Positions 1 to 64,000 of a stretch of DNA of 64,000 nucleotides are shown in pieces. The stretch lies in sequence record PQ464590.1; one strand, 5' to 3'. Both the position numbers and the translations under genes were made by a program. The notes under the pieces are model-generated. The model saw only the letters and a list, made by a program, of their open reading frames with translations, was not told the DNA's origin and did no database searches. The stretch's first letter is position 1; each line of letters opens with the position of its first letter.

Positions 1-413
1 TCACCCTCTTCTTTCACTACACCGCAAGCAGCACGCTTAGCTGGGATTGTGCAGACCTTCTTACGGTTACGAGTGGTGTGGCTGTGTCTCCAGCAACGAC
101 CGTAGTAACGGCGTGTACGTGGCTGTTTAGACCAGTAGTACGGCTGATATGCGTGCCATTCACCGATGAATAGATCCGGTGAAACCATTTTCCCATTCAC
201 GAATAGGTAGAAGCCGTGGTCATGCTCGAAGCTTTTATCGAACCATGAACCGTACTGTTGTGACTTCTTCTCTTTGAATGCCCCTAGGTTGAACTTCATG
301 GAACCGTAGAAACGATTGATTCCTCCGAAGTTCCACACATAAGAGTACATATCATCGATGAACTCTACTTTTCCGTTGTCGTGGTAAATTACAAATTTTT
401 GTTCAATGAACAT
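1..413 (-). CDS. hypothetical protein, truncated by the window edge (MFIEQKFVIYHDNGK...)
   Basis: Translated by hand; ATG at 413 with an AGGAG RBS upstream; open to position 1. Confidence 0.7.
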   Translation of the reverse strand, partial: MFIEQKFVIYHDNGKVEFIDDMYSYVWNFGGINRFYGSMKFNLGAFKEKKSQQYGSWFDKSFEHDHGFYLFVNGKMVSPDLFIGEWHAYQPYYWSKQPRTRRYYGRCWRHSHTTRNRKKVCTIPAKRAACGVVKEEG

Positions 414-483
414 AGTATATCTCCTGAGTTAGTGTTAAGTATCACTAAGCAAAAGACATACGACCCTTATGTAGTTTTTTCAA

Positions 484-1107
484 TTATTCATAATCCTGTG
501 TAGTATGAGGGTAAGAGCAAATGATACGGCCTTTGTAAGACAGAATCGTTGCATCTTCACCATTTTCATTTTCAAACTCACGAACTTCAATGAGTCCGAA
601 TTTCACTTTCTTGGTACGCTTCATGTTATTGAGGTTCCAAGTATTTACTAAGTGTTCTTTACAGTCTTTAGTACTGATCTTGTCTTTAGCAGGAACTGAA
701 GGATCAGATAGTGATTCACCAAGAATATAAGTTAGTACTTCATGAACTTCTTTCTTAGGTACATCATCGTAAGATAGTTCAGCAACACTTTCCATCGTAC
801 CAGGGAACAATACCCCTGAATCGATTAGTGGTTTGTAGATGTCATATAGTAGATAATCAAGGAATCCTTGGTCGTCTAAGTAATCAATCATCAACAGACC
901 GAACATCATGATAGCTTCATCACCGTCATCCACTGGACGACCAATGACTAGTGAACCGTCAAATTCACTGAGAACATCGTCGATTTCATCATCTTCGTAG
1001 TCACCACCTGCTAGGGCTAGTTTCTTGATTTCTGAAAGAACCCACTGTTTGTTGTACAACGGACGAATCATTGAATCTTTATTTGCTACGACTTCTGACC
1101 ATTCCAT
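484..1107 (-). CDS. hypothetical acidic protein
   Basis: 207-aa ORF in the minus-strand gene run; GGAG RBS. Confidence 0.75.
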   Translation of the reverse strand: MEWSEVVANKDSMIRPLYNKQWVLSEIKKLALAGGDYEDDEIDDVLSEFDGSLVIGRPVDDGDEAIMMFGLLMIDYLDDQGFLDYLLYDIYKPLIDSGVLFPGTMESVAELSYDDVPKKEVHEVLTYILGESLSDPSVPAKDKISTKDCKEHLVNTWNLNNMKRTKKVKFGLIEVREFENENGEDATILSYKGRIICSYPHTTQDYE

Positions 1108-1110
1108 ACA

Positions 1111-1815
1111 TTACTCCTTTGGAAATAAGATGCGAAACTCGGTCATGAGTTTGTTGTGTAAAGGTTTAGCGTATTCTATCACAGCACGCGAACGCTCGTC
1201 AAGAGTTCCTTCAGTACTGTAATAAATCTCTTCCATCTTTTGACGGATATCGTCCAGGTACATGATGTGCAAATCTTTGCGAATAAGCGTCATATTCATC
1301 GTGTCGTTCGGGAATTCACAAAATGCCCAGATAGCCATTATAGGGAATTTGAACGCATGATACAAGTTCTTTAGTCCCAGTACTGGATCATAATCATGAG
1401 GAACTACCAACTTCTTGCGTCCCTTGTCGAACGCTCTGTCAGTACTGCGGCTAACCAATTTCCGTACTTTGCTCTTTTTCAATCCAGCGGTAAGTCTGAA
1501 CGAGATATGATTCATGATATTCGTTTTGTTGGTCATGAAGCACAGTATCTTCGGTTCTAGATTAGAAGCCAAATCATACACTTCATAGTCCTGCAAGTAC
1601 TCTACATTGATAGGAATTTCACCACATTCTGGTAAGTACACGGTTTCATTCTCACGATTGAAACCCGTTACCATCTGTACTATTACGTCGATGTCACGTG
1701 GTACTGCACTTAGACCCCAATTTGCTTCAGCAAAGGAACCAACAATGATTACACCTTCTGCCCATGACTCATCGAAGTAATCATAGATGGCTTGTGCCAT
1801 TAATTCGGCATTCAT
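1111..1815 (-). CDS. Pol-beta superfamily nucleotidyltransferase-like protein
   Basis: IIVGSF...RDIDVIV (GS plus DxD) and a helical C-terminus KNLYHAFK; start moved to MNAEL because the longer start lies in a terminator. Confidence 0.6.
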   Translation of the reverse strand: MNAELMAQAIYDYFDESWAEGVIIVGSFAEANWGLSAVPRDIDVIVQMVTGFNRENETVYLPECGEIPINVEYLQDYEVYDLASNLEPKILCFMTNKTNIMNHISFRLTAGLKKSKVRKLVSRSTDRAFDKGRKKLVVPHDYDPVLGLKNLYHAFKFPIMAIWAFCEFPNDTMNMTLIRKDLHIMYLDDIRQKMEEIYYSTEGTLDERSRAVIEYAKPLHNKLMTEFRILFPKE

Positions 1816-1828
1816 ATGTATTCCCCAT

Positions 1829-1853
1829 AAAAAAGCCCACAAAGTGTGGGCTT
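1829..1853 (-). terminator. intrinsic terminator
   Basis: AAGCCCAC-ACTTT-GTGGGCTT hairpin continuing into a T-run on the minus strand. Confidence 0.8.
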
Positions 1854-1937
1854 AAAGTGTTTTCTAAACAACATGGAGTCAAATAATATTATTATTCTTA
1901 TAACATTATTTATCAATATTGTTTAGAATAAGCCCGT

Positions 1938-2180
1938 TTAGATACGGGTCCATTGTTGGTTTTTCACCTCAACAACTTTCTTTTTGCCCTGCTTCACTAC
2001 TTCATAGGTAGTGATCATTGGAGAGCCTTTCACGCCAGTTTGTAAACCCTTGTCGGAAACAAGTAGACGGAACTGCTGACGGGTTAGAACACCGTCACGA
2101 CGAAGACGCTTTAGATTCGCTAGTGCGTCAGCACGGTCTTGTTTAGCACGTTGGGTTTGAGCTTGTTGTTTCTGTTCCAT
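1938..2180 (-). CDS. small basic hypothetical protein
   Basis: MEQKQQAQ start with GAGG RBS. Confidence 0.7.
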   Translation of the reverse strand: MEQKQQAQTQRAKQDRADALANLKRLRRDGVLTRQQFRLLVSDKGLQTGVKGSPMITTYEVVKQGKKKVVEVKNQQWTRI

Positions 2181-2193
2181 GTTTATTTCCTCT

Positions 2194-2601
2194 TTAGTTA
2201 CTTTTGGTATATTTGCGGACTGCATCCATATCCAAATACTTCTGGAAACGTTGATACATTTCTTTCAGTACTGGTAGGTCTTGATACAAGATGTTAGGGT
2301 TTTCTATATTATCATAGAATTCTTCTTCTGTACAGTCAAATGATACATTACTTATTCCTGTACCGAAATCTTCAAAATACTCACACTGTTCATCATACGA
2401 ATCGTTATAGAGTTCATCATCTTCTAAATCTTCATCGTAATAATTATAGATAGACATGGTACAATGGTTCAAACTGAAAGTCAACACATCAGTACTGATT
2501 TTTGCTGATTCTTGTAAGAAACATCTCCCATAATCAGATTCGAATTGTCGAATATTATCGACATTTTTCATCTGTTCAAATAATTTTTGAATCTCTGTCA
2601 T
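2194..2601 (-). CDS. acidic hypothetical protein
   Basis: ORF track; contains CTEEEFYD, weakly like the FQ-array motif. Confidence 0.7.
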   Translation of the reverse strand: MTEIQKLFEQMKNVDNIRQFESDYGRCFLQESAKISTDVLTFSLNHCTMSIYNYYDEDLEDDELYNDSYDEQCEYFEDFGTGISNVSFDCTEEEFYDNIENPNILYQDLPVLKEMYQRFQKYLDMDAVRKYTKSN

Positions 2602-2609
2602 ATGCACCT

Positions 2610-2639
2610 ATTATATCACATTATTTGGGTTTGTCCCAA
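2610..2639 (-). promoter_or_regulatory. promoter of the TTGGGA-N18-TATAAT class with extended -10
   Basis: TTGGGA CAAACCCAAATAATGTGA TATAAT. Confidence 0.7.
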
Positions 2640-2680
2640 AACTTTTTATTAAAATGGGGAAATTTCTTTCCCCTTGTAAC

Positions 2681-4147
2681 TTATAGGTTTTTCTCTGCGA
2701 ACTCTGCGAGTGGAGAACGAACAACACCTTCTAGCTCAATTACACGGCAACCAGGCCAGTCTTTGAATTTCTCGGTAACGTACGTTAGACCACTGTTCGT
2801 TGCACTGATGAACTTACTATCAATCTGGGAGAGGTTCCCCATGATGATAACTTTACAGTTCTCACCTGCACGAGTCAGGATTGTTTTTGCCTGTGCTGGA
2901 GTAATGTTCTGGAATTCATCCACGATTAGAATCGTGTTGATGAAACTACGTCCACGGATGAAGTTCAGTGCTTTGAACTGAATCTGATTACGTTTCATAA
3001 TCTCTTCAATGGAACCTTGAGGGTTCGCGTCATCTTTGTGTAGATATTCCAATGCATCAATCGCCGCACCACAGAACGGGATTACCTTCTCCGCTTCTGT
3101 GCCTGGTAAGAAACCAATCTCTTCAAATTGTGAATCCTGTGTCTTAGAGAAGATCACACGCTCAAAATGATTTCCACGGTTCTTAGGCTCCAGTACTAAG
3201 TCCAAAGCACATGCTAAGGTGATTAGTGTTTTACCTGTACCCGCTGAACCTAATAGTACTGTAATGTGTACATCAGGATCAAGAATACTATTGATTGCCA
3301 TCGCTTGCTTCACGTTCTTAGCTTTGATGTCCCAGACTTTCTGACGAAGTGCTTGACTCTGACCAACATCCAAGAATATTTGGTACACAGTTTCATCAAC
3401 TTCACCATCTGTGAACTCGCGATCACCAAGGCCATCATACACTAAAAGTAGCTCATTGTCATCATAAATGTAGTCACCACAGCATAGACCGTCAGGAAGT
3501 AGACCATCAAGAGTACCTTCTGGAACCATGTGGTATAGTTTACGACCTTCTTGTGTACTGAACACTTCTACATTCTTGTCTTCAATCTCTTTCCAGAAGT
3601 CAAAATCAATTAGATGATGACCAGTGTGGATTAGATCCGAGTCAGAAATGGTAACATCATTACGATAATCCTGTACTTCAACACCGTAAGCCATAGCTTT
3701 GATACGCATGTTGATATCACGAGTTACCAGTACTGAACCAGTTGCTAATGCTACAAGAATAATCTTGTCGTCCGGTACGGAACTATGCATTAGTGTAGCT
3801 ACTTTTGCAGCTTCTTCATCAGGTTTGTCCTGATTCATAGCACGCAATAGTGCTTCAGCTTCTTCAGCAGTAACGATTTGCAAACGACTGTCTGAATCCA
3901 AATGTGGATGCAGACGGGACATATCCACTCCAGTAGCTGAAATTTCTTCGTGAGTAGCTTCTTCAAGAATGTTGCTGATGTTACGGATAGCGATACGTGC
4001 ATCACGTGATACGTCAACGTTACGACTCTTGATTGAATCCAACTCTTCCAGTACTGTAAATGGTAGTACTACTGTTGCTCCTTTGAATGCAGTTACTGCA
4101 CTATGGTCACTTAGTAGTACGTTTGTATCGATAGCATATTTTTTCAT
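2681..4147 (-). CDS. phoH: PIN-domain PhoH-family ATPase (PhoH2/YlaK-like)
   Basis: N-terminal YAIDTNVLL and PDDKI..TRDINMRIKA (PIN); GSAGTGKT Walker A; FIRGRS; VDEFQN; MGNLSQID. Confidence 0.93.
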   Translation of the reverse strand: MKKYAIDTNVLLSDHSAVTAFKGATVVLPFTVLEELDSIKSRNVDVSRDARIAIRNISNILEEATHEEISATGVDMSRLHPHLDSDSRLQIVTAEEAEALLRAMNQDKPDEEAAKVATLMHSSVPDDKIILVALATGSVLVTRDINMRIKAMAYGVEVQDYRNDVTISDSDLIHTGHHLIDFDFWKEIEDKNVEVFSTQEGRKLYHMVPEGTLDGLLPDGLCCGDYIYDDNELLLVYDGLGDREFTDGEVDETVYQIFLDVGQSQALRQKVWDIKAKNVKQAMAINSILDPDVHITVLLGSAGTGKTLITLACALDLVLEPKNRGNHFERVIFSKTQDSQFEEIGFLPGTEAEKVIPFCGAAIDALEYLHKDDANPQGSIEEIMKRNQIQFKALNFIRGRSFINTILIVDEFQNITPAQAKTILTRAGENCKVIIMGNLSQIDSKFISATNSGLTYVTEKFKDWPGCRVIELEGVVRSPLAEFAEKNL

Positions 4148-4185
4148 AAATGTCCTTATTCATGATTTGGGGGAGGTTTAGAACC

Positions 4186-4497
4186 TCATTTTGAAGGGCT
4201 GTAGTTCACATAGCACTGTAAACCTTTAACCCGTTCAGTCCAACACTGCTGGTAAACAATTTGACCAACAGAAACTGGATCTGATGATGTTGAATTCATT
4301 GTAAGACCATCACTGGTTTTCAATGTAAACGAACAATCTGTCTTATTACACTGTCCAATCGTCTGAACAGTGCCTGTATTGTAGTATATGTCTAATTTTT
4401 CAGTATCGTAATTTTGCTGAGCAGCACAAAAGCGAATTGAGAAAATTGCAACGATAATACCGATAAAACCCAGTACTTTCATCATACACAGCCTCAC
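4186..4497 (-). CDS. hypothetical secreted or membrane-anchored protein
   Basis: Hydrophobic N-terminus VLGFIGIIVAIFSI; several Cys. Confidence 0.65.
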   Translation of the reverse strand: MRLCMMKVLGFIGIIVAIFSIRFCAAQQNYDTEKLDIYYNTGTVQTIGQCNKTDCSFTLKTSDGLTMNSTSSDPVSVGQIVYQQCWTERVKGLQCYVNYSPSK

Positions 4498-4820
4498 AGA
4501 TGTTTGAAACCATTCTCCAGATAAGATACAATATTCTTCAACCCAACTGGATTTGCACTGTGTACATAGTACTCGAATGGTTCTTTTATATTATTGTCAA
4601 ACATGTACTCAATCAAGTACTTCGCAAAAGTATAACCCGTCTTTTCTACAACCGATTCGGTATCTCCGAGGTCATGGTCGAATGATACAAATTTTGGAAG
4701 TCCGTGCTTTTGTACATACGAAATCGCGTCTTCACATGTGCGTACTACGATAAAACCCTCTCCTGGGTAATATTTTTCAGCATCACGCAAGTCATCAATG
4801 AACAGATTATACATCGTCAT
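4494..4820 (-). CDS. cyclic-phosphate-processing receiver-like (cREC) domain protein
   Basis: LFIDDLR, VSFDHDLG, TGY, HSANPVG motifs. Confidence 0.75.
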   Translation of the reverse strand: MTMYNLFIDDLRDAEKYYPGEGFIVVRTCEDAISYVQKHGLPKFVSFDHDLGDTESVVEKTGYTFAKYLIEYMFDNNIKEPFEYYVHSANPVGLKNIVSYLENGFKHL

Positions 4821-5381
4821 TTACCCTCTGTCAACGTAATCTACAAGAAGATTTTCCTTCTGTACAAGACGTTCAAGTTCAATCTTTGATGTGCCAATAT
4901 ATAGCTGGTTCAGTAGGTTATTGTACCCACATTCGTTACCACGGCCTTTTGTGTACCGACAGATGTGCATGAGGTTCACTCCTGCATTCTCTGCACTAAA
5001 ATGCTCACCCAAGTGTGCGTTGTTGCGAATTTCTTGAATTTCTTCGTACGAAACCTCATACGAGAAACTATGATTGTGTGTCCCATTTGGGCTGCGAATA
5101 CTTGCCAACGGCACTAAACGTGAGATATCGAGGTCGTAATGGATCTCTTCCCATGCTTCACGTTTGATTGCAATTTCAAGGGATTCATCGTCAGGTTCTA
5201 CCCCGCCGCCAACACCACCCATCATACCATCGAAGCGTAACTCTGACAGTACTAAAGATACGTTCGGAATGTCATTATATGGGTAATTCTGGTACGGAGT
5301 GCAATTCCGTGCGAAAATCCACACAAATACACAATCAAAACGAGTACTGCGTTCACCGAATGGTACGTCAACAAATTCCAC
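4821..5381 (-). CDS. Nudix hydrolase, NUDT16/X29-like
   Basis: LRFDGMMGGVGGGVEPDDESLEIAIKREAWEEI Nudix box; GTG start with AGGAG RBS. Confidence 0.8.
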   Translation of the reverse strand: MEFVDVPFGERSTRFDCVFVWIFARNCTPYQNYPYNDIPNVSLVLSELRFDGMMGGVGGGVEPDDESLEIAIKREAWEEIHYDLDISRLVPLASIRSPNGTHNHSFSYEVSYEEIQEIRNNAHLGEHFSAENAGVNLMHICRYTKGRGNECGYNNLLNQLYIGTSKIELERLVQKENLLVDYVDRG

Positions 5382-5391
5382 TTTTGTTCTC

Positions 5392-6150
5392 CTATTTTAC
5401 TCTCTCATTTACGATATCAATAATTTCCAGGATTGCTTTTGTGATCGGCTTGTAGATTTTTTTGTCGAATGTCCAGTCGTTCTCACCACGTTTGAGGTTC
5501 ACATTCACCGTGTAAGCTGGAGTACCTAAGCCAACCATGTCGCTCCATTTCAAAATTGTATCAGAAGAACCAATTATAATAACTGTATCAAGTTCTGTCA
5601 AGCTTTGCAGTACTTTATTTCTTTCCGCATAAAGTTCAAGACGCTGTCCATCAACGTAACGCTCGGATTCACCAAGGAAAACAACGTTAGGTTTAGCATA
5701 TACGTCCTCTTTTGGAATATATGGTTCATAACCAACATCCAGTACTGTAAAGTCGTTGTGAGCCATAGAATATCCCTCAATTACTTCTTTGAGGTTCCCA
5801 TGAAGGTGCATGGCAGTCCCACCAGCACGCTCATACAAATCGTCCACATTAGCTGTAATGTGCAAGAAACGATCACCCAATTCAGCTTCTAGTCCAGCAA
5901 TGGCGTAGTGTGCATCATTTGGTTCTTTATCCTTCAACATCACTCGGAGAGTATTATAGAATGAATGAATGTGAGCGTACTTACTACCTAAGCTTGCAAT
6001 ATTACAAACATCATTGATGTTCACACCTTCCCATAATGCATCTTCTGCATCACGAAAAGTACTAATGCCTGATTCAGCACTAAGACCAGCACCGCTTAGA
6101 ATTAACAAACGTTTCTGTCCCTTAGCTGCAATAAATTTATTCACATCCAT
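5392..6150 (-). CDS. Sir2/CobB-family NAD-dependent deacylase
   Basis: SGAGLSAESGISTFRD, ITANVDDLYERAG, HLHG, KPNVVFLGE, IIGSS. Confidence 0.92.
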   Translation of the reverse strand: MDVNKFIAAKGQKRLLILSGAGLSAESGISTFRDAEDALWEGVNINDVCNIASLGSKYAHIHSFYNTLRVMLKDKEPNDAHYAIAGLEAELGDRFLHITANVDDLYERAGGTAMHLHGNLKEVIEGYSMAHNDFTVLDVGYEPYIPKEDVYAKPNVVFLGESERYVDGQRLELYAERNKVLQSLTELDTVIIIGSSDTILKWSDMVGLGTPAYTVNVNLKRGENDWTFDKKIYKPITKAILEIIDIVNERVK

Positions 6151-6159
6151 AGTAGTTCC

Positions 6160-6591
6160 TTATTTCTTCAAAGCATTAAACTTTTCATTTCCAAACTTAA
6201 GTACTTTAGGAATACCCTTCAATTTGATTAAAAGTTCTAGTAGATCTTTGTCAGTGTCTTTTGGATTGTAGTTAATGCTCATGTGTATTAGTAAACTGGG
6301 GAAGCTATGATTATATCCAGCATTCTTAAGTTCTTTGTGACGTTTAGTAATGCCAGGAGAGTCCATCGTGATTGCTATCGCATCACCTAGCATCTTCACA
6401 CCAGTTACTTTTGCGTTGTATACTTGGGTATTTTTTAGTATTTTGATGTCAGGATCACTTTCATCGTACATTAATGTGCAGTGTAGTTCAGAAGGTGGAA
6501 GACATTCAATTCCTGCCACCTTCATTATTTTATGAATTTCTTTTGCTTGTGCTGCGTCGAGCTTCAAGCTGCAATATCCTTTGCCAGCCAT
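6160..6591 (-). CDS. acb1: Acb1-like (T4 gp57B-like) 2H phosphodiesterase
   Basis: Two HxT/S motifs: LHCTLMY and IHMSINY; T4 57B as recalled has IHSTICY and PHITLSY with similar spacing; start at MAGKGY. Confidence 0.72.
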   Translation of the reverse strand: MAGKGYCSLKLDAAQAKEIHKIMKVAGIECLPPSELHCTLMYDESDPDIKILKNTQVYNAKVTGVKMLGDAIAITMDSPGITKRHKELKNAGYNHSFPSLLIHMSINYNPKDTDKDLLELLIKLKGIPKVLKFGNEKFNALKK

Positions 6592-6602
6592 TATAATTCC
6601 CT

Positions 6603-6827
6603 CTAAAAGATTTGTGAATACGCTCCTATCCAGTACAGAATGTATGCCAATCCCAAGATTGTACAAACGAATCCTAACCGCATGATTACGAACGCTATTT
6701 GATAGTATTTAGAGGTGAATCTGCCGTCCGGTTCAAGAAAACCTTCCTTCCAGCCCTTCCATTCTAACATCATGATTACAACACTAGCAAGGTACAGTAG
6801 TACGATACCCCAGTATAAAATTACCAT
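6603..6827 (-). CDS. small membrane protein
   Basis: Two hydrophobic segments. Confidence 0.65.
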   Translation of the reverse strand: MVILYWGIVLLYLASVVIMMLEWKGWKEGFLEPDGRFTSKYYQIAFVIMRLGFVCTILGLAYILYWIGAYSQIF

Positions 6828-7266: not shown

Positions 7267-7296
7267 GATATTACCCTCTATTGTTAAAGTACTGAC

Positions 7297-7325
7297 ATCG
7301 TATCATTATCATGAACCGATGTCAA
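7297..7325 (-). promoter_or_regulatory. sigma70-like promoter
   Basis: TTGACA-N17-TACGAT. Confidence 0.7.
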
Positions 7326-7330
7326 GAAAT

Positions 7331-21412: not shown

Positions 21413-22158
21413 TTTGAAGAACCTCGCTTGAAACTATGTTCATCACGTGGAAGTCGTTTATGACGAAGCATGTTACCATCAAGATAAGCTACCGTTAGCT
21501 CACCACTCAAGTACATACTATCAATCCATACGCGATTCCCGTAAATCAATGGATTAGTTACTGATGTATGACCACTGAATACATAGTCCACCCCACTAAT
21601 ACGTGGAGCCATTAGAACGTTGTTCTTCTGACAGTACTTGAACGTGTCAGTACTCCAGTGAATTCCGTCCAGAATATCATTTGAACCGTTCTGTACATCA
21701 CTCTTGAATGTATCCCAATCAGTGTACCTTAGTGGGACGGCTGCATGAGAGACTCCCAGTACTTTACCTCGATGATGTACTTCAATCACAAAAGGTAATT
21801 GTGCTAAGTAATCTCGGAAGAAATTTACTCCAGTTAGACCTACTTCTCGTGTGAACTCTTGACCACCATTGTTGAACCACACATTGTACCAAGAACGGTC
21901 ATGAGCACCTGCAATGCACATGTATTCGTGATTTCCCATTATTGCATACCGATTCTCGTCGAACAAGAATTCAAATAACGTAGCAGCGGTTTTCGGTCCA
22001 CGGTCAATTAGATCACCAACACTGATTACTACATCGTCGTCGGTAATACCAAATGTTTTTAGTGTTCTTTTATACAAGTCATATTGACCGTGTATATCAC
22101 CGACGAAGTATACATTCTTATCATCAGGAATATTCAGTACTAGTACTGGATTATTCAT
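21409..22158 (-). CDS. Ser/Thr protein phosphatase (PphA/NinI-like metallophosphoesterase)
   Basis: GDIHG, GDLIDRGP, GNHE, GHT. Confidence 0.92.
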   Translation of the reverse strand: MNNPVLVLNIPDDKNVYFVGDIHGQYDLYKRTLKTFGITDDDVVISVGDLIDRGPKTAATLFEFLFDENRYAIMGNHEYMCIAGAHDRSWYNVWFNNGGQEFTREVGLTGVNFFRDYLAQLPFVIEVHHRGKVLGVSHAAVPLRYTDWDTFKSDVQNGSNDILDGIHWSTDTFKYCQKNNVLMAPRISGVDYVFSGHTSVTNPLIYGNRVWIDSMYLSGELTVAYLDGNMLRHKRLPRDEHSFKRGSSK

Positions 22159-31783: not shown

Positions 31784-31811
31784 TAAAAAGCCCAGTTGCA
31801 GTACTGGGCTT
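31784..31811 (-). terminator. intrinsic terminator
   Basis: AAGCCCAGT-ACTGCA-ACTGGGCTT then TTT. Confidence 0.8.
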
Positions 31812-31815
31812 GATT

Positions 31816-37205: not shown

Positions 37206-37744
37206 TTACGTATCCTCTCATATACGTCCACGAACATCTTATACTTCAGTACTTCATCATCCCCAGGAAGGGCTAGTCTGAAATTATCGAAGTCCTGATT
37301 TCGTGCACAGTTACGCATCATGGTTGAACTGAATACGCTTTCTTCTCTTTGAGAACCAGCCATTACAGTACTAATATTAGCGAAATTGTATAAGGAACCG
37401 TTGTACTTGTCAAGAGTTTTTTGAAACTCATCTTTGCGGTCAGAACCGCCTACGAAAATTATATTGTGGTATTTCCCATCTAAGTCCGTCATGATGTCGA
37501 ATAGTTGGGATTTAGAACCTTGCAGTACTCTACCAATGTCAGGATAGAATCCATCAATGTAGTACTGCTTCAGTTCAAGAGGAAGTGGATTCTTAACATC
37601 ATCCACTGTTGCACTAAGGAATAGTTTTAGATCCGCATTTAGATCCTTTTCTAACTGTAATGCATGTTCGAACACATACCCATGACCAATGTGGACAGGA
37701 TTCATGCGTCCGAACATAAAGATACACGTATCTCTTTTAGACAT
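37202..37744 (-). CDS. HIGH-family cytidylyltransferase-like protein
   Basis: FGRMNPVHIGH, KNPL, GGSDR, SSTMMR. Confidence 0.85.
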   Translation of the reverse strand: MSKRDTCIFMFGRMNPVHIGHGYVFEHALQLEKDLNADLKLFLSATVDDVKNPLPLELKQYYIDGFYPDIGRVLQGSKSQLFDIMTDLDGKYHNIIFVGGSDRKDEFQKTLDKYNGSLYNFANISTVMAGSQREESVFSSTMMRNCARNQDFDNFRLALPGDDEVLKYKMFVDVYERIRK

Positions 37745-38255
37745 TCTTCATCACCAAGCCTAGAGTCTTTAAGTACTGAATCTTAGAATCAGTTAAATTC
37801 TTGTCCAGTACTATCAAGCATGAAGGGAAAGGAGCCGAGTCTTGTTTCTCGTTCTCATTCTTATTCGGGTCAAAGAACTTCAATCTACCTTTGATAAAGC
37901 AGATGCAGTCACAAACCTTAGCTGCGTACTTCTGGAATGCTACAGTATCGGTCCTTGAAGGAACTAACAGTACTACAGTAGCACCTTTATCGTACGCGTC
38001 TACAGCTTTAGCGAGCCACGTTTTTAGGTCATTGTAAGGGGGATTTAGCCAACAAATTTCAGTACCCCAATCTTGAATTAGACTATTGTCGTCAGGAGTG
38101 AAGTACTTTGAACATAATGCACTGTCTTCAAGACAAGCTACATCTAGTGTGAAATGCCATTCGGCATCTATATCTTTGAACAAATCTCTAGGAGTATTCC
38201 ATGTCTGCGATTTAGAACTGAAATGGACTCCATGTTTATCTTTTTTCTCATCCAT
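37737..38255 (-). CDS. phage DNA N6-adenine methyltransferase
   Basis: WNTPRDLF, FTLDVAC, WLNPPY, LVPSRT, FIKGRLKF. Confidence 0.9.
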   Translation of the reverse strand: MDEKKDKHGVHFSSKSQTWNTPRDLFKDIDAEWHFTLDVACLEDSALCSKYFTPDDNSLIQDWGTEICWLNPPYNDLKTWLAKAVDAYDKGATVVLLVPSRTDTVAFQKYAAKVCDCICFIKGRLKFFDPNKNENEKQDSAPFPSCLIVLDKNLTDSKIQYLKTLGLVMKNV

Positions 38256-55860: not shown

Positions 55861-55947
55861 TATTACATAGCATCTTACACTTTATCTATACTTTTGGAAG
55901 CGGAAAATTTTTTGACCCCGATACAAACGTATAAAGGGTCTTATTTA

Positions 55948-56649
55948 TCAAAACAAATCTGCACCAAATTCACGCATGAAATATTCATGATGCTTATCAG
56001 CCATCTCCGTCCATTCTCCCTTCGGTATTAGGTCATACAATTCCTGTACCGATTCAGGTTCTAAAACACTGTAAAAATGTAATCCATATACTGAATTGAA
56101 CTTGCAAAATGAATCCATGTAAAACTTCCATACTGAATACCATTGCCCATAATCACCTTGGATTGTACTGTTCTGGAAAAACGATTCCTGTACTGAATCT
56201 GAACTAATCGTCTTAGCGTGCATCTCTTTGGATAAATTTTTCAAACCATCAAAACGATTACCATGATCCATCAAATGAATTATGTCTTCATTCTTAGCGG
56301 ACATGTAATAACATGATGATGGATGGAATATCGGATTTATATCATGTTTGCCAGCATAAGGCTTGGAACAAAAATAAACGACACTTCCTGTCAAAAATGC
56401 ATCCCAAAAATCCCGTACCTTCCATGAACTAATCTTGGCACAATTGTTCACCGATGACATAATCGCTAAACCATGCTTGTCCAAATATACTGGTCCTTCT
56501 TTGCCCACACCTGGTTCGCCTACCTCATAACCGAATACGGCATTAACGGACTCAATATTTGGATTGATTTCCTGCAACATCACAATAGCAAGCATCTGCT
56601 TGAACATCACAAAATCTGATACGTCAATTTGTGGACCACACGGTTCCAT
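55948..56649 (-). CDS. FQ-motif family protein
   Basis: VQESFFQNSTIQ. Confidence 0.75.
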   Translation of the reverse strand: MEPCGPQIDVSDFVMFKQMLAIVMLQEINPNIESVNAVFGYEVGEPGVGKEGPVYLDKHGLAIMSSVNNCAKISSWKVRDFWDAFLTGSVVYFCSKPYAGKHDINPIFHPSSCYYMSAKNEDIIHLMDHGNRFDGLKNLSKEMHAKTISSDSVQESFFQNSTIQGDYGQWYSVWKFYMDSFCKFNSVYGLHFYSVLEPESVQELYDLIPKGEWTEMADKHHEYFMREFGADLF

Positions 56650-56658
56650 TATGCACCT

Positions 56659-57270
56659 CTAACTTGTCTCTCGCAATAATTGCTTGTACGCCAATTCACA
56701 TACATGGAATGTCTCTTCACAGCACTCCACCTCTAAATCAACTGAATCAAAATCCTGATTGAATAATGCATTCACAATGAATGGTACAATGTACGATTCA
56801 TTCATATCCATCAACAATTCAAAATTCAATTCTTCTGTTCTGGTACGGATATCCTGTACTGAAGGTACTTGACGAACACTACTGTCTGGAAAACTAACTG
56901 TACTATCCGCTCCTAATCCACCTGTACCCATTCTCTTGAAAGGATTATCCAATGTACTGACCGATGTCCCACGCATCTTCTTATCAAGAACTGCGTTCGG
57001 ACGGAACAACATCGTAGGCATCTTGTGAATACTCATAACGCATAAATCACCTACTGATTCTAAGGAACAATACAACTGAATACCATGACGGGAACGAATG
57101 TATCTCGCATTACGCATGATAATCGTTCCTACATCATCATCAAAACGTACTACACGTGAATTCTCTGACTCGTACATCAGCCCATATAAGGGCTTCAGTA
57201 CTGAATCATAAAAATCCAAAGCTATCTGTACTTTGTTATCACTACTCAAAATTGAATTCCTTTGAATCAA
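56659..57270 (-). CDS. FQ-motif family protein (divergent)
   Basis: TEELNFELLMDM. Confidence 0.7.
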   Translation of the reverse strand: MIQRNSILSSDNKVQIALDFYDSVLKPLYGLMYESENSRVVRFDDDVGTIIMRNARYIRSRHGIQLYCSLESVGDLCVMSIHKMPTMLFRPNAVLDKKMRGTSVSTLDNPFKRMGTGGLGADSTVSFPDSSVRQVPSVQDIRTRTEELNFELLMDMNESYIVPFIVNALFNQDFDSVDLEVECCEETFHVCELAYKQLLRETS

Positions 57271-58261
57271 ATTTGGAACGTACGCGAATGGAATGAGCTA
57301 AATCACTTGTGCGTTCACCGTACTCAATCATTCTAGCACGCTGCTCTGCGATAATCAACTCCAAAATGATCGAAAAATCATCGTTCGTTTCGGACGCTTG
57401 AAGGTACTCAAGGTTCATATCTAATGTATTGAAATTGTACGGAATACGATCCTCACATGATGATGCTAAACACTCCGCCACTGTCGTATTCATTCTGGTA
57501 TGTACTAAGGAACCCTGGAACATGTACGCTTCCATATCGGAAGCTTGCAGTACTGGTACGCTCGTATTATTGTCCTCTGCATTATAACATACAATGTCCG
57601 CCCCCACTACTGCGGTACGCATGAATCTCCAACGATCCAATACGTACATACCACCCACTTTCTGACTCTGGGGATGACGTAACTCAATAATGTTATTCGA
57701 TTTCCATGCATCAGCATCTTTCTGTACTGAAATCTTTATCTCCCCCGAATTGTACCGTACTGAATAACGCTTCCCATTGATCTGGAAATATTCCTGCTGC
57801 CGATTGAACTGACGAGCATTCAACCAATCTGGCTCAATCTGCCATCCGAATACGGATAACATCAACTCCCATAACTGTATCGTCTTGGCAATTGTGTTCA
57901 TCGTCTTGTCATGCATCTTCACTAATTCTGGAATGTCACCGTCTGTGATATCCATAATATCAGGTGTCTTGATTTCCACGTAGCCCTCTTCTACACGTTT
58001 TTTCTGTGCAAGGTAATGAGCCATCCACATAAAATTGGATTTACCTGAACTACGACTTGAACCAATTACATTCAATTGCCCAGGAGCGAAACCACCGTTG
58101 ATTCCGCTAATCCCCATCATTGGTGTAGCGTACATCGATGCTATATCATAATCATATGTGAATGTACCTGGTGTACCACGATTAGCACGACCTTGAGCTT
58201 GGACATTGGTAGGAATCAATTTCTTGAAAGCATACGCATCAGCAACATTCATGAACGGCAT
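57242..58261 (-). CDS. FQ-motif family protein with an N-terminal extension bearing PolB-like and helicase-like motif fragments
   Basis: MEAYMFQGSLVH; YDIASMY; GGFAPGQLNVIGSSRSSGKS. Confidence 0.75.
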   Translation of the reverse strand: MPFMNVADAYAFKKLIPTNVQAQGRANRGTPGTFTYDYDIASMYATPMMGISGINGGFAPGQLNVIGSSRSSGKSNFMWMAHYLAQKKRVEEGYVEIKTPDIMDITDGDIPELVKMHDKTMNTIAKTIQLWELMLSVFGWQIEPDWLNARQFNRQQEYFQINGKRYSVRYNSGEIKISVQKDADAWKSNNIIELRHPQSQKVGGMYVLDRWRFMRTAVVGADIVCYNAEDNNTSVPVLQASDMEAYMFQGSLVHTRMNTTVAECLASSCEDRIPYNFNTLDMNLEYLQASETNDDFSIILELIIAEQRARMIEYGERTSDLAHSIRVRSKFDSKEFNFE

Positions 58262-59004
58262 TATAATTCCTCAATATCCTGTACTGTAGCTGGTTGTAAA
58301 CCGAAACGCTCTAATAACATCGGTACGTCATTAGGGTCAATGTCAATCCCTGGGCAATTGTACTTCTGAAGGTACGCCATCAACAACTCCACAACAGGAC
58401 TCATCGAACGGAATAACCAAGCCTCCGCATTCAAATTCGCATCTGAAGCGTACTGGTCAAAATCCTTCAATTTCATATCCACGTCTACTTTCCCACCCTT
58501 ACTGAACTGGTAAAACGTGTACTCACCGTTGTTCACAGGAGCGAATACTACGTTGCTCAACTGAGAACCAATAATGGTGTACTGACAGGAACGTTTATAC
58601 CGAGCATCCTCTGGGGTACGGAAAATAGCAACACGTGTACGAATATCCTGTACCGTTGTTGTTTCTTCACCTGTCTCTTCATTCTTCGTTTTAGATTCGG
58701 TTTGCTGACCCGTCAAATAATGATACACGCGATCCATGTATCCATTATCTGGTGTCTCAATCTCTTGTACTTCTTCTTGTACCAGGTCAGCATTAATCTG
58801 ACGTGCACCAATCTTATTCTGCATCTTAGCTTGTTCTTCAGGCGAAATCTTCAACGCATTACTGGTGTCCATATCTTCTGTACTGAAGAATTGATCCAAC
58901 ATGCGTACATTATTGTGCATGAATGTACTGATGTTCAAAATGTTCTTAGCTAATAGCAATGTTTCTACGTAACGGGATAACTTACCCTGACGCATTCTTT
59001 TCAT
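58261..59004 (-). CDS. hypothetical protein, possibly with a divergent FQ motif
   Basis: AEAWLFRSMS. Confidence 0.75.
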   Translation of the reverse strand: MKRMRQGKLSRYVETLLLAKNILNISTFMHNNVRMLDQFFSTEDMDTSNALKISPEEQAKMQNKIGARQINADLVQEEVQEIETPDNGYMDRVYHYLTGQQTESKTKNEETGEETTTVQDIRTRVAIFRTPEDARYKRSCQYTIIGSQLSNVVFAPVNNGEYTFYQFSKGGKVDVDMKLKDFDQYASDANLNAEAWLFRSMSPVVELLMAYLQKYNCPGIDIDPNDVPMLLERFGLQPATVQDIEEL

Positions 59005-59642
59005 TATTCTTCTCCATCTTTGCAGTACTGGTAAATTTCTTGAACGAATCTGTGATCGTCTTCGTCAAATTCTGGAATCACCTTCATCACAGCAACTAGC
59101 GATGCCATGCGGTGAACGAAACTGTACTTCAATATACTATCATGAAGGTACGATGTCAAGATCTCATTGAACAAATATCTCTCATCATGTATCAATGAAA
59201 GCTGGAATAACATCTCTTCTGTGTACTCACGTAGCAGCAAAACATTATGATCATCCGATGTTGAACTGTACTTATAACCCCTACGCATCGTCGTATGGAT
59301 ATTGAATAATGTATTGTCCTTTTCGAACAATGGTGTGCACGGTACATGCATGTTATTGCGTTCTTCACAATAAATTGGATCGTCAAATACAACAATACCT
59401 AATGATATTTTGTTCGTTGTGAATTCTGTACCGTACACTTCTTTATTGTCAGGGTTACGTGTTACATAACATTGCTGCGTATATAACTCTTTATTCATTG
59501 GTGCTTTCTGGGTAAGGTACTGTATTAACCGTACTAAGATGGAACCGTACCGTACTGCATCATTGTAATACTTCGGATTTGGCATTTTCATTCTCGAATA
59601 AAGGGGAGGGTAAACTCTTATCCCTGTGTGCGTAAAATTCAC
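59004..59642 (-). CDS. FQ-motif family protein
   Basis: TEEMLFQLSLIHD. Confidence 0.75.
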   Translation of the reverse strand: MNFTHTGIRVYPPLYSRMKMPNPKYYNDAVRYGSILVRLIQYLTQKAPMNKELYTQQCYVTRNPDNKEVYGTEFTTNKISLGIVVFDDPIYCEERNNMHVPCTPLFEKDNTLFNIHTTMRRGYKYSSTSDDHNVLLLREYTEEMLFQLSLIHDERYLFNEILTSYLHDSILKYSFVHRMASLVAVMKVIPEFDEDDHRFVQEIYQYCKDGEE

Positions 59643-60225
59643 GAACAGCTTGCATTCGCTCCTTTGGACTATTCTGGATTATAACACACATATGACCAAT
59701 GTCAACCCGTGCTGACAAAATCTTTTCGTACCTCAATGTACTCAACAAAATGAATGATAACAATTCCCAATATGTATGTACTAAACTCTCCTGGAAATAA
59801 TACTCCTCTGTCCACTCCGATAAATCAGGATATCTCTGGTACGACATATCCTCGTACTGAATCTGATTCGTATCCATACCTGTACTACTGGAATTACGAA
59901 CCTTCACAAATTTATCTTCTATTTTGTACGATACAACACAGGACTCATATGCTCCACTGTATATTGTACTACTGTAAAGCAATGAATTATTTGTCTGTAC
60001 CTCATCAGATAGAACACTAAAATAAGAATCGAATAATAGTTCTCGCGTTCTTGGGGGAGGTGGAATCATTCGAGTATCACCTATACTTATCTTGTACTCA
60101 TTGTTATGATAACCCCAAAGACCTACTACTAAATCTTTGTCATGGTACATTGTGTACAGAATAGCACAAATATCATCAGCTAATCCTAATGACTCTTCTA
60201 ATGTACTAGGAAGAATAAAACTCAT
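59560..60225 (-). CDS. FQ-motif family protein
   Basis: TEEYYFQESLVH; start MSFIL. Confidence 0.75.
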   Translation of the reverse strand: MSFILPSTLEESLGLADDICAILYTMYHDKDLVVGLWGYHNNEYKISIGDTRMIPPPPRTRELLFDSYFSVLSDEVQTNNSLLYSSTIYSGAYESCVVSYKIEDKFVKVRNSSSTGMDTNQIQYEDMSYQRYPDLSEWTEEYYFQESLVHTYWELLSFILLSTLRYEKILSARVDIGHMCVIIQNSPKERMQAVREFYAHRDKSLPSPLFENENAKSEVLQ

Positions 60226-60715
60226 CGTATCGTTTCTCCAATTGATGATATAACTGCTCGAACTCATTCAAGAATTTGTAGAACTCTCCCAGTACTATAA
60301 AAACGCTAGGAACATTCAATGCCCTACATTCTCTGAAATACTCTAATGTATAAAGTTCTAAATCGGTCAGTACTAAACTCTGCTGGAATTCTTCTTCTTC
60401 AGATAATAAAGGAATAGATATCTCTTTACTTTCTTCTGTTGAATAAGCCCCTAAACCCAGTACTGCGAATACAGTACTCTCTTCTAATAAAGACATCTCT
60501 ACATGTTTAGGTGATGCATAAGCTGTATAAGAATGACGTATGCTCTTATTCTCTCTAAGGAACAAAGTACTATGCGTACATAACTTCCATGAATCATCCC
60601 TGTTCTTGAACATCATTGACATTATCATAAGTGGATGATGATACATTGCATGTAACAGTACTGCTGTAGCTTTTGCTAATTCTTTTGCTGTATAACGAAA
60701 ATCAAAATGAATCAT
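60206..60715 (-). CDS. FQ-motif family protein
   Basis: SEEEEFQQSLVL. Confidence 0.75.
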   Translation of the reverse strand: MIHFDFRYTAKELAKATAVLLHAMYHHPLMIMSMMFKNRDDSWKLCTHSTLFLRENKSIRHSYTAYASPKHVEMSLLEESTVFAVLGLGAYSTEESKEISIPLLSEEEEFQQSLVLTDLELYTLEYFRECRALNVPSVFIVLGEFYKFLNEFEQLYHQLEKRYDEFYSS

Positions 60716-61937: not shown

Positions 61938-62273
61938 CTATACTCCCACCTCTATTTTGTCATCATGGTCTTTTTTATTTGAGTTTATACAGTACTTCAA
62001 ATGTTTCTGAAGAGCTATCATTTGGTGTACCGTGATTGGATGTTCCCATACGCACATTAGTTGGAATAGTTCTTCTTCCGAAAGACTTTCTAAGTCAGGG
62101 AGACTGTACCGTTGAACTTCACCTTTCTCACTATATGTATTGTACCTAAAATCAGTTGAACCATCTTTTAGAACAATACAATGATCAAAGTTATCTGGAT
62201 GTGTGAAGTACAGAGTGTAGTCTTTTGAGATATTACTTCCTTTATATTCACGGTACTGTATATATAATTCCAT
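61938..62273 (-). CDS. FQ-motif family protein (short subfamily)
   Basis: PDLESLSEEELFQLMCVWEHP. Confidence 0.78.
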   Translation of the reverse strand: MELYIQYREYKGSNISKDYTLYFTHPDNFDHCIVLKDGSTDFRYNTYSEKGEVQRYSLPDLESLSEEELFQLMCVWEHPITVHQMIALQKHLKYCINSNKKDHDDKIEVGV

Positions 62274-62274
62274 A

Positions 62275-62607
62275 TCAGTACTCCAATGTTAGTTCAAATG
62301 ATCTATATCCAGACCACTTGTTGATATTGTATTTTACATATTTCTGAACCATCAAAACGAAGTATATAGAACATGGTTCATCCCAAAGTAGCGAGGCTTG
62401 AAAGAATTCACTTTCATCCAGAATTGTCAAATCTGGAACTTTAATGCATGGTTCGTGTTCTTGTATATCTTGGATTTCAGTTTGTGGTTCATCTGTTCTC
62501 CAGTTATTATAGTACACAATGAAGTAATCATGGTCTTCTTCTTGCACCTGTACTTCAAACTCACCATTCGCTTCCCTGTAATAAGATACGATCACATTAG
62601 CTTTCAT
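62275..62607 (-). CDS. FQ-motif family protein (short subfamily)
   Basis: PDLTILDESEFFQASLLWDEP. Confidence 0.78.
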   Translation of the reverse strand: MKANVIVSYYREANGEFEVQVQEEDHDYFIVYYNNWRTDEPQTEIQDIQEHEPCIKVPDLTILDESEFFQASLLWDEPCSIYFVLMVQKYVKYNINKWSGYRSFELTLEY

Positions 62608-62933
62608 TAGTACTCCAGAATAAGATTAGCGTGTGAGCATCCGTTGTACACATGAAGGTTCTCCAATATGAACTCCTGTGCCGCGAGTACAAAGTATATC
62701 TGGTACGGTGCATCCCATATTAGTGAGGCTTGAAAAACCTCTTCCTCGGTCATGCGAGTAAAGTCTGGAATAGGAATGCTTGGTTTATAGTCATCATCGG
62801 ACTGAATTTTGAATGCAGGTGCAGCATTGTTTATTGAGTAGCACGCCACATAGTACTCCGATGATGTATCTCTAAGATGAAATTCATATTCACCATTGAC
62901 ATTGTAATAAAATAGTTCTACTTGTGTTTTCAT
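62607..62933 (-). CDS. FQ-motif family protein (short subfamily)
   Basis: PDFTRMTEEEVFQASLIWDAP. Confidence 0.78.
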   Translation of the reverse strand: MKTQVELFYYNVNGEYEFHLRDTSSEYYVACYSINNAAPAFKIQSDDDYKPSIPIPDFTRMTEEEVFQASLIWDAPYQIYFVLAAQEFILENLHVYNGCSHANLILEY

Positions 62934-62941
62934 TTTGATTC

Positions 62942-63274
62942 CTAGTATTCAAGACCGTATGAATAGAAAGTATCACCTTTCCATGTTGGTTGACGTTCGT
63001 AAACATATTTCTGGATAGCGTATACAAGATAGAATTCTAATGGTTCATCCCATACTACACTCGCTTGGAATAACTCTTCTTCTGATAGTGTTGTTAAATC
63101 TAGTACAGTATCATCATACGGGCCGTGATTGTCTATATGTTGGATGAGCCATTCTAACTCTAAGTTTTCGTTATGACATAGAATCAACATATAGTCAGTT
63201 CCAGTACAGTCAACGTGAGCCTCATAACATCCGTCATCCCATTCGTAATAGTTTATCCCGATAGTGTGTTTCAT
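62942..63274 (-). CDS. FQ-motif family protein (short subfamily)
   Basis: LDLTTLSEEELFQASVVWDEP; start MKHTI. Confidence 0.78.
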   Translation of the reverse strand: MKHTIGINYYEWDDGCYEAHVDCTGTDYMLILCHNENLELEWLIQHIDNHGPYDDTVLDLTTLSEEELFQASVVWDEPLEFYLVYAIQKYVYERQPTWKGDTFYSYGLEY

Positions 63275-63609
63275 TAGTACTCCAACTCTATATCCCAAGT
63301 GAATGAACCATACTCATATTCATATAGTACATCATAACCATACTTCTGAATAGCATGAACAAGTTCAATATCCAATTCATGGTCCCAGACACACATCTCC
63401 TGGAAATATTCTTCTTCAGAGAGTGTAGGTAAGTTCTTCACATCTTTACGTGGGGTCGCAAGTTTATCCATAGTACATTCAATTGTACCCAGATTATATG
63501 AGAGCCGAATTACCGTTTTCGTTTTATCATCGAATGCATGGAACTCTACAGAGTCAGCTAGTGAAAAGTATATCCTACATTTTAGATACTTACTTCTCAA
63601 AAAGTACAT
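63274..63609 (-). CDS. FQ-motif family protein (short subfamily)
   Basis: LPTLSEEEYFQEMCVWDH. Confidence 0.78.
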   Translation of the reverse strand: MYFLRSKYLKCRIYFSLADSVEFHAFDDKTKTVIRLSYNLGTIECTMDKLATPRKDVKNLPTLSEEEYFQEMCVWDHELDIELVHAIQKYGYDVLYEYEYGSFTWDIELEY

Positions 63610-63618
63610 GTTGCACTC

Positions 63619-63954
63619 CTAGTATATCAAGTCTCTGAATACAAGTTCATTCGATTTTTTTAGGTACTCAAGATTTTCTAGCACGTATTTTTGGACGGCT
63701 AACATTTTTTCAGTCTCTGAAAATTCTTGAACGAGAGAATATTGGAATAGCTCTTCTTCCGATAGTACAGTCAAATCTGGAACTGTACCCGATTTTTCCC
63801 ACGAGTGTATCATACCATGTTGCCATACGCAACCGTTCGAACCAAATAGATATTCGAGGAAAAAGATGTTATCTACCTTACAACGAATCAGACTTACAGA
63901 AGAATATGGAAGGTATTTGAAGTTCACGGTTATAATGTCGTACGTTGTTTTCAT
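63619..63954 (-). CDS. FQ-motif family protein (short subfamily)
   Basis: PDLTVLSEEELFQYSLV. Confidence 0.78.
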   Translation of the reverse strand: MKTTYDIITVNFKYLPYSSVSLIRCKVDNIFFLEYLFGSNGCVWQHGMIHSWEKSGTVPDLTVLSEEELFQYSLVQEFSETEKMLAVQKYVLENLEYLKKSNELVFRDLIY

Positions 63955-64000
63955 AATAGTATGAATACCCTTTTATGTAGTTGAGAAATACGCTCGGCTA

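Follow-up and report, generated by a model that had tools for sequence, protein, structure and literature searches.

AGTACT, an iterated palindrome of Erwinia phage Hallingskeid and its relatives: a possible recognition word that marks phage DNA as different from host DNA

The stretch of DNA analysed here (the window, 64,000 nucleotides) corresponds to positions 302159-366158 of the record of Erwinia phage Hallingskeid, PQ464590.1 (366,158 bp), that is, to its last 64 kb, with 100% identity. Hallingskeid is a T4-related "group 2.2" jumbo myovirus, and its isolation host is Erwinia aphidicola (PMC11780129). The minus strand carries nearly all genes of the window, the majority of which have no assigned function; those with an assigned function belong to nucleotide and NAD metabolism or encode ligases and a Dam-family methyltransferase (Table 1). 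The subject of this report is the palindrome AGTACT, which is scattered over all of these genes. A preliminary description had counted 20 copies in the first 6,000 nucleotides and had found the word conspicuous up to the end of the window. Both statements are confirmed: the count of 20 is exact, against 1.95 expected per 6 kb, and the window holds 244 AGTACT where base composition predicts 20.8. In 100 dinucleotide-preserving shuffles of the window, AGTACT occurred 21.2 ± 4.4 times, with a maximum of 35. The core GTAC is found 781 times (223 expected) and the 8-mer CAGTACTG 82 times (0.8 expected, ~100-fold). The excess is also genome-wide. Over 364 kb assembled from the public record, to which all genome-scale counts of Hallingskeid refer, there are 1,306 AGTACT against 118 expected (11.1-fold) and 410 CAGTACTG against 4.6 expected (90-fold). 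The genome contains ~3,900 GTAC sites, an excess of about 2,600; on average, GTAC recurs every ~94 bp and AGTACT every ~280 bp.

The count is not inflated by repeats or paralogues, because each of the 244 AGTACT sites in the window has a unique 26-nt context. The excess extends along the whole genome, with 60-150 GTAC per 10 kb. Conserved genes for structure and replication show the weakest enrichment, as do two (CDS0097 and CDS0221) of the five genes annotated as mobile endonucleases. The spacing of the sites is Poisson-like, with a coefficient of variation of about 1. No helical periodicity or regular spacing is evident in the distances between GTAC pairs, whose profile is flat besides a peak at 5 bp that arises because the flank preferences overlap. 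Markov models of the window predict 531 GTAC at order 2, and 55, 116 and 196 AGTACT at orders 2, 3 and 4, respectively; the models of high order come near the observed AGTACT count because they already contain the inflated pentamers.

The preference is not limited to the core. The consensus at the GTAC sites is C-A-GTAC-T-G, with graded and symmetric flanks (A at the first flank position and C at the second), and the genome-wide flank analysis found no information past the second flanking base. Reverse-complement flank pairs occur in similar numbers and, AGTACT being a perfect palindrome, no orientation bias is seen. Moreover, the two flanks of a site are correlated: CA is found with TG on the opposite side 410 times, compared with 224 times if the flanks were independent. 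The equality of reverse-complement flanks, together with this correlation, fits the recognition of a symmetric site in double-stranded DNA. Among the NAGTACTN palindromes of the genome, the 410 copies of CAGTACTG are accompanied by 58 of AAGTACTT, 57 of TAGTACTA and only 5 of GAGTACTC, which is strongly disfavoured.

To separate the word from the coding sequence that carries it, we applied three controls of 200 shuffles each to the coding DNA of the window: a permutation of synonymous codons, which keeps the protein and the codon usage; a permutation of codon order, which keeps the codon content; and a synonymous permutation with both flanking nucleotides fixed, which also keeps protein and codon usage. 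Coding DNA contains 229 AGTACT, whereas the three shuffles gave 51 ± 6, 27 ± 5 and 78 ± 7; for CAGTACTG, 75 copies were observed against 4.6, 1.3 and 8.4. The z-scores against the codon-preserving shuffles are 20-60. GTAC is spread over the reading frames (241, 215 and 277), and it is as dense in non-coding as in coding DNA. It is even found inside a terminator stem, as the preliminary description had noticed: the hairpin downstream of CDS0610 (Table 1) contains AGTACT at 31800-31805, in its stem and loop, and is followed by a run of five U. Codon choice depends on the context. AGT is used for serine in 77.5% of cases before AC and in 25% otherwise, GTA for valine in 85% before CTG (39% otherwise), CTG for leucine in 50% after GTA (13%) and TAC for tyrosine in 89% after CAG (48%). 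The dipeptides ST, VL and QY are enriched 1.5- to 1.7-fold, and the reversed TS, LV and YQ stand at ~0.9. The word had been described as more than an amino acid effect, and all three shuffles, the three frames and the non-coding DNA agree on this; a loss of the excess under a codon- and dipeptide-preserving shuffle, named beforehand as the contrary outcome, was not found (229 observed against 27-78).

Phages are expected to lose palindromes, and in other respects Hallingskeid does so to an extreme degree. GCGC is absent from the 364 kb (548 expected) and from the window (about 90 expected). Twenty-two of the 64 six-base palindromes have zero copies in the 364 kb; among them are the sites of KpnI, BamHI, PstI, SalI, SacI, XhoI, SphI, NcoI, PvuII and SmaI, with 21-50 copies expected each. 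The KpnI site GGTACC is wholly absent (0 against at least 50 expected) although it holds the GTAC core, which is itself enriched 3-fold. The under-representation typical of restriction-site avoidance is thus seen for GCGC, GGTACC and 21 other hexamers, whereas AGTACT goes the opposite way and is the only large exception; the next palindromes, TGTACA (2.1-fold) and CGTACG (1.8-fold), both have the GTAC core. Because AGTACT is the site of ScaI and its core that of RsaI, the enrichment is a liability that some benefit must outweigh. The genome also holds the E. coli Chi sequence GCTGGTGG in excess: with 53 copies (13.5-fold) it is the most over-represented 8-mer without GTAC, and 11 copies lie in the first 20.3 kb of the record (389-20308), all oriented so as to be active for RecBCD entering from the left end. 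The excess of Chi and the purge of palindromes show that the Hallingskeid genome responds to weak selection on short words.

The DNA of the host group has the reverse composition. In a 50-kb sample of E. coli K-12 (1000001-1050000), AGTACT occurs at 0.06 per kb and GCGC at 6.8 per kb, compared with 3.6 and 0 per kb in Hallingskeid; the three AGTACT copies in this small sample amount to 0.26 of the expectation. The coliphages lambda, T5 and DCP80 are without the signature.

To explore whether the pattern is shared by related phages, we collected from IMG/VR the loci that surround the genes for the major capsid protein and NAMPT. All relatives with a capsid protein identity of at least 86% (mostly 91-96%) show AGTACT at 3- to 9-fold and GTAC at 1.4- to 2.5-fold, with no GCGC and no GGTACC. 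They include RaK2 (confirmed by BLAST), Kaldavass and putative contigs of Serratia BF, Yersinia fHe-Yen9-04 and CBB. High AGTACT with no GCGC and no GGTACC is therefore common to the enterobacterial RaK2/121Q/CBB-like jumbo clade. Environmental relatives of 73% capsid identity or less are without the pattern, with the exception of three loci: one at 73% (L029) has a weak AGTACT excess of 2.4-fold and normal GCGC, and two others (L036 and L041) are GCGC-free. The C at the second flank position and a strong depletion of TTAA are most marked in Hallingskeid among these relatives. The absence of GCGC and GGTACC throughout the clade, whatever the host genus, may point to a phage-encoded GCGC-specific nuclease in addition to host restriction.

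The individual sites are not fixed. When 286 orthologue pairs (67% nucleotide identity) were aligned by codon, the position of AGTACT was kept in 31% of cases, against about 16% for other hexamers, and 69% of the sites were not shared. Synonymous codons are retained at a higher rate where they make up the word (0.90 against 0.74 for AGT, and 0.88 against 0.67 for ACT). These results show that density is maintained while individual AGTACT sites turn over.

A second group of elements bears this signature. When IMG/VR was scanned for AGTACT in clusters of three, a scan that is a sample only, the matches listed were mostly collagen-like or tandem coding repeats that are not genome-wide enrichments; they also included RaK2 and one contig unrelated to the jumbo clade (L145). 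Relatives of this contig form a family of more than 60 loci in Escherichia and Pseudescherichia, representing a siphovirus-like prophage of ~36 kb. Its genes encode a lambda-type terminase and portal, an HK97-type protease-capsid fusion, a tape-measure protein and a tail fibre, as well as a SegE-like GIY-YIG endonuclease, a large serine recombinase and a methyltransferase-like protein. In Pseudescherichia vulneris NBRC 102420 (contig BBMZ01000008) the prophage sits between ppdD/hofB and nadC; there its terminase large subunit is split into separate ATPase and nuclease reading frames, and no replication genes were recognised. Related copies are found in Escherichia sp. ESNIH1 and in a Pseudescherichia metagenome-assembled genome, from which the shared tail-protein locus was fetched. 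No close relative of the family was found among isolated phages or complete E. coli genomes. The closest isolated-phage relative is the head-tail module of Escherichia phage DCP80 (PQ671644), at ~30% amino acid identity; the DCP80 record (1-42353) joins this siphovirus-like module to the T4-like genes motA, ndd and rIIA, and both parts are free of GATC (0 in 42 kb).

Across the prophage family, AGTACT is enriched 4- to 11-fold and GTAC 2.1- to 3.6-fold, GGTACC is almost absent, and nearly all loci have 0 GCGC where about 30 would be expected. Inside the element, 2 kb contain 20-30 GTAC and 0 GCGC; outside, they contain 2-8 GTAC, 0 AGTACT and 15-31 GCGC. The signature stops sharply at both host junctions, and in the bacterial chromosomes examined it delimits the family at the resolution of the 1.5-2 kb counting windows. 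Here too the word is independent of coding: 82 AGTACT were observed against 23 ± 4 in the synonymous shuffle, they occur in all frames and in non-coding DNA, and codon choice depends on the context as in Hallingskeid. The flank preferences are those of the jumbo clade, with A first, C or A second and G disfavoured. Profiles of hexamer palindromes correlate between the two lineages at r = 0.78, and each of them correlates with E. coli or with distant jumbo relatives at only 0.04-0.22. Chi has no copies in the prophage family. In a tblastx comparison of the family with Hallingskeid, no homology was found besides one T4-type lysozyme domain, which matches that of the jumbo phage baseplate hub at 50-58% amino acid identity; this suggests gene exchange. 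Judged from these comparisons, the trait of being rich in AGTACT and free of GCGC and GGTACC is convergent in two lineages that share almost no genes.

Taken together, selection for a recognition word is the best account of a pressure that is specific to 8 bp, symmetric, independent of coding, upheld while sites turn over and reached independently by two such lineages. The preliminary description had proposed a selected genome-wide mark, and this is supported by the codon shuffles, by the occurrence in all frames and in non-coding DNA, by the distribution over the clade despite a turnover of ~69%, and by the unrelated prophage family. The reading that we favour, with a confidence that falls somewhat short of even, is that AGTACT is a selected, strand-symmetric recognition word in double-stranded DNA, held at high density, which marks the DNA as different from that of the host. 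The word would have GTAC as its core and (C/A)-A-GTAC-T-(G/T) as its full preference, with selection acting on the DNA itself, and its most likely reader would be a dimeric protein or enzyme that recognises a symmetric site. Richness in AGTACT and freedom from GCGC and GGTACC would make up a three-part signature, the opposite of the enterobacterial host chromosome. Since this signature is the inverse of the chromosome at both words, a role in telling such DNA from host DNA is favoured. The word may mark DNA as "not host" and as "one of us", a role like that of hydroxymethylcytosine in T4, which is lacking in these unmodified T4-related jumbo phages. The density of sites would count rather than their exact positions, and the benefit would lie in the discrimination of phage and host DNA, the marked DNA being protected, recruited or organised. 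As for the reader, it may come from the host, or from the jumbo phages, whose code the prophage family would then have copied. A site for a phage DNA-binding protein and a site for recombination had been among the first suggestions: a protein-binding site is indeed the best reading, a role in recombination is conceivable, and the evidence suggests that the reader need not be encoded by the phage clade.

Several observations weigh against this interpretation. No reader protein was found, although no proteome-wide domain scan of the ~680 phage genes was made, and no shared gene or host factor is tied to the word. Homology was tested by tblastx only, a search in which shared proteins that are small or evolve fast would go unnoticed. 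The spacing is random, and there is no positional logic besides ~21 early promoters that are specific to the Hallingskeid lineage. In the prophage the two flanks are independent (95 AGTACT against 94 expected under independence), so that recognition of the whole hexamer is less clear there. A host reader should matter to other coliphages, yet lambda, T5 and DCP80 show no enrichment. Finally, the case against methylation rests on a published nanopore comparison that was inspected manually.

A more elaborate version, which we regard as unlikely in its entirety, takes the signature as a portable identity code. AGTACT-rich and GCGC-free DNA would replace hydroxymethylcytosine, a nuclease or other factor of the phage would act on host DNA that bears GCGC, and a symmetric AGTACT reader would protect or recruit the phage DNA. 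The prophage would have copied this code so as to survive or exploit infection by a jumbo phage, as a hitchhiker or satellite, or both lineages might answer to the same host reader.

One alternative to selection for recognition is a sequence-specific mutational or repair drive, similar to very-short-patch repair, that turns near-cognate words into GTAC and AGTACT without any benefit. E. coli Vsr, which acts in this manner, leaves a depleted precursor word. Vsr-driven CCWGG enrichment in E. coli resembles the present case in that a short word is raised genome-wide and independently of coding. Several features are what a time-dependent process would give: accessory genes and intergenic DNA, under the weakest constraint, are enriched the most; conserved structural genes and the two mobile endonuclease genes named above are enriched the least; and site turnover is high at constant density. 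However, Vsr depletes its precursor CTWGG and yields an enrichment of less than 2-fold, whereas here the enrichment is 3-fold to 90-fold and no neighbour is clearly depleted; the one-mismatch neighbours of the core stand at 0.78-1.92 of expectation (ATAC 1.01, GCAC 1.19 and GAAC 1.92). A drive encoded by the host is unlikely because the host chromosome, lambda and T5 are not enriched, and one encoded by the phage would require the same enzyme in two lineages that share a lysozyme domain only. Specificity for 8 symmetric base pairs is also unusual for a repair bias. We thus consider such a drive rather improbable.

Modification of the word, in the manner of HIP1 or of the chlorovirus M.CviQI type, was another early suggestion, and it is not supported by the published data. 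Nanopore sequencing of native and amplified DNA reported only GATC (N6-methyladenine, 6mA) and CCWGG (5-methylcytosine, 5mC) in Hallingskeid virion DNA, and in Kaldavass the same two motifs plus an unknown modification at TGCAT; native Hallingskeid reads mapped normally (PMC11780129). Coverage drops linked to nicks were described for another phage only, and the study contains no test specific to AGTACT (PMC11780129). In other phages, nicks in virion DNA are associated with the motifs GCGC (T5) and WACTRTGAC (tf/Rembedalsseter). Hallingskeid has two methyltransferases, one of the Dam family (PF05869, CDS0623) and one C5 enzyme (PF00145). By type they fit the GATC and CCWGG marks, to judge from their families, and CDS0623 does not appear to be a candidate for GTAC; the host Dam and Dcm could equally account for these marks (PMC11780129). 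Furthermore, the avoidance of GGTACC, in spite of a 3-fold enrichment of GTAC, implies that sites containing GTAC are exposed to restriction, since avoidance would be needless if the core were protected. Methylation at GTAC or AGTACT is accordingly disfavoured. For it to have been overlooked there speak the analogy with HIP1, the fact that the specificities of the two phage methyltransferases are inferred, the methyltransferase-like gene of the prophage family, and the recovery of the published motifs by manual inspection (PMC11780129). Against it, a signal at ~3,900 GTAC sites would be hard to miss, and we give an overlooked modification only a slim chance.

A similarly slim chance is given to AGTACT as a preferred site of a type IIA topoisomerase, be it the T4-type topoisomerase II of the phage, host gyrase or topoisomerase IV. 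Such an enzyme would cut on either side of GTAC with a 4-base stagger, and selection would favour its sites because they let a very large genome be decatenated or supercoiled fast. Type IIA topoisomerases prefer G and C at the ends of the 4-bp stagger. The symmetric site, with four central bases that begin with G and end with C, is in line with this, and both topoisomerase II subunits are encoded by the jumbo clade. On the other hand, no topoisomerase gene was found in the prophage family, and host DNA, lambda and T5 are not enriched. The mapped motif of E. coli gyrase is a degenerate one of 130 bp with a periodicity of 10.75 bp and indirect readout, and its G preference is quinolone-dependent (PMC6379681). 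The gyrase motif in its published form is rejected, as this extended periodic form is unlike AGTACT and no phasing of ~10.75 bp is present in the GTAC pair distances.

AGTACT also has a place in early promoters of Hallingskeid. Between 0.9 and 22.6 kb of the record (890-22650) there are ~21 sigma-70-like early promoters in which AGTACT lies directly against the -10 element. They have the form TTGACA, 9-10 nt, AGTACTgTATAAT, i.e. (C)AGTACTG followed by TATAAT; in many of them another AGTACT lies immediately upstream of the -35 element, at a distance of 20-22 bp, and several are near-identical cassettes. The word could then be the operator of an early-promoter regulator, with its intragenic copies being incidental. 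These promoters explain only ~40 of the 1,306 sites, however, and none lies in the window. The predicted early promoters of CBB are without AGTACT, yet CBB shares the genome-wide enrichment, and a conserved promoter operator is thus rejected; as an account of the word, the operator is very improbable.

Even less probable is a decoy or activating site for the host nucleoid-occlusion factor SlmA. The SlmA site GTGAGTACTCAC has a central AGTACT, requires G at position 1 and T at position 2, and tolerates changes of the central TA (PMC3020112). SlmA occurs in the host group, and AGTACT stands at 0.26 of expectation in the E. coli sample. The phage motif, in contrast, requires the central TA and contains no information past the second flanking base; the 4 copies of GT.AGTACT.AC match what chance would give, and no flank pair is rarer than GAGTACTC (5 against 410 for CAGTACTG). 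We therefore reject SlmA on its flank requirements (G, T at positions 1-2 and A, C at positions 11-12). No better placed is a by-product of base composition, codon usage, amino acid content or avoidance of other words, which we tested and rejected: the codons GTA, TAC, AGT and ACT are common and the order-4 Markov model predicts 196 of the 244 AGTACT, but three codon-preserving shuffles fail to produce the excess, non-coding DNA is equally enriched, and a ban on other palindromes cannot lift one word 11-fold or its 8-mer 90-fold.

Three further candidates were discarded. The geometry of a LexA box is not supported, as there is no excess at a core-to-core distance of 18 bp. A primase site is not either: GTA without a following C is not enriched (GTAA 0.87, GTAG 0.91 and GTAT 1.01), from which it follows that the palindrome and not the trinucleotide is selected. 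Double deamination of GCGC to GTAC fails in number, because the GCGC deficit of 548 is far below the GTAC excess of ~2,600, and GTGC and GCAC are near expectation.

Returning to the recognition word, it may be compared with other iterated words. HIP1 (GCGATCGC) of cyanobacteria is likewise a massively over-represented palindrome that occurs in all frames and in non-coding DNA, is independent of codons and is kept across related genomes. Unlike GTAC, for which no methylation is reported and where the phage methyltransferases fit other marks, HIP1 is tied to a cognate methyltransferase and to methylation of its core. AGTACT differs further in being carried by a virus, the host of which lacks it, and in recurring in an unrelated prophage family. 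Chi, the uptake signal sequences (USS) and the DNA uptake sequences (DUS) are similarly dispersed, over-represented and kept across relatives despite positional turnover; they let a DNA-processing machine treat own and foreign DNA differently, and their density matters more than their exact position. Unlike the perfect palindrome AGTACT, they are asymmetric and orientation-dependent and have known readers (RecBCD for Chi, ComP and the uptake machinery for the others). Hydroxymethylcytosine in T4 and the restriction-modification enzymes with which chloroviruses destroy host DNA also make viral DNA distinct from host DNA, so that nucleases or other factors may attack one of them and spare the other. 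The analogy extends to function alone: T4 and chloroviruses modify their bases, whereas here the distinction would lie in the word content, GCGC-free and AGTACT-rich. What is new is an iterated genome word of the HIP1 sort for which no methylation is reported and which is part of a convergent three-part signature. We found no mention of AGTACT or GTAC enrichment in the papers on this phage clade that were searched.

A phage that otherwise purges palindromes has thus gathered one restriction-type palindrome per 280 bp, at the price of altered codons and amino acids across hundreds of genes. The sharing of word, flanks and GCGC absence by two unrelated lineages of one host family points to an interaction between protein and DNA, so far unrecognised, in the biology of enterobacterial phages. 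It also suggests a way in which large T4-related phages with unmodified DNA could keep their own DNA apart from that of the host. The three-part signature also offers a simple marker for such elements in metagenomes.

Table 1. Positions of the word and of other features within the window
Feature	Position	Strand	Basis or remark
Dispersed word enrichment (781 GTAC, 244 AGTACT, 82 CAGTACTG)	1..64000	.	Counts, shuffles
First AGTACT of the window, within a coding region (example of an intragenic site)	670..675	.	
Two directly abutting AGTACT (starts 22136 and 22142)	22136..22147	.	
Rho-independent terminator hairpin, downstream of CDS0610	31786..31812	-	Fold -17.3 kcal/mol, z-score -4.3
CDS0623, Dam-family N6-adenine DNA methyltransferase	37737..38255	-	PF05869, E = 9.5e-32
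GTAC-dense, AGTACT-poor stretch (4 AGTACT)	55900..60300	.	Flank mostly TGTACT (24 copies)
Six tandem paralogous genes (~110 amino acids, mean identity 43%)	61938-63954	-	blastp

Some local features of the window stand apart from the general pattern. Four of the five genes in the GTAC-dense, AGTACT-poor stretch have 16-21 GTAC per kb and the fifth has 5.7; this stretch may be a block with a different history. The set of six tandem genes near the end of the window is the sole paralogue family that blastp found there. Other short words vary among the phages. TTAA is depleted to 0.13 of expectation in the window, to 0.13-0.79 over 40-kb blocks of the genome and to 0.5-0.85 in relatives, so TTAA avoidance is lineage-specific and regionally uneven. 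TGCA stands at 0.30 of expectation in Kaldavass (region 200001-250000) and at 1.4-1.8 in Hallingskeid and most members of the clade, and TGCAT, the word reported as modified in Kaldavass, is depleted rather than enriched there.

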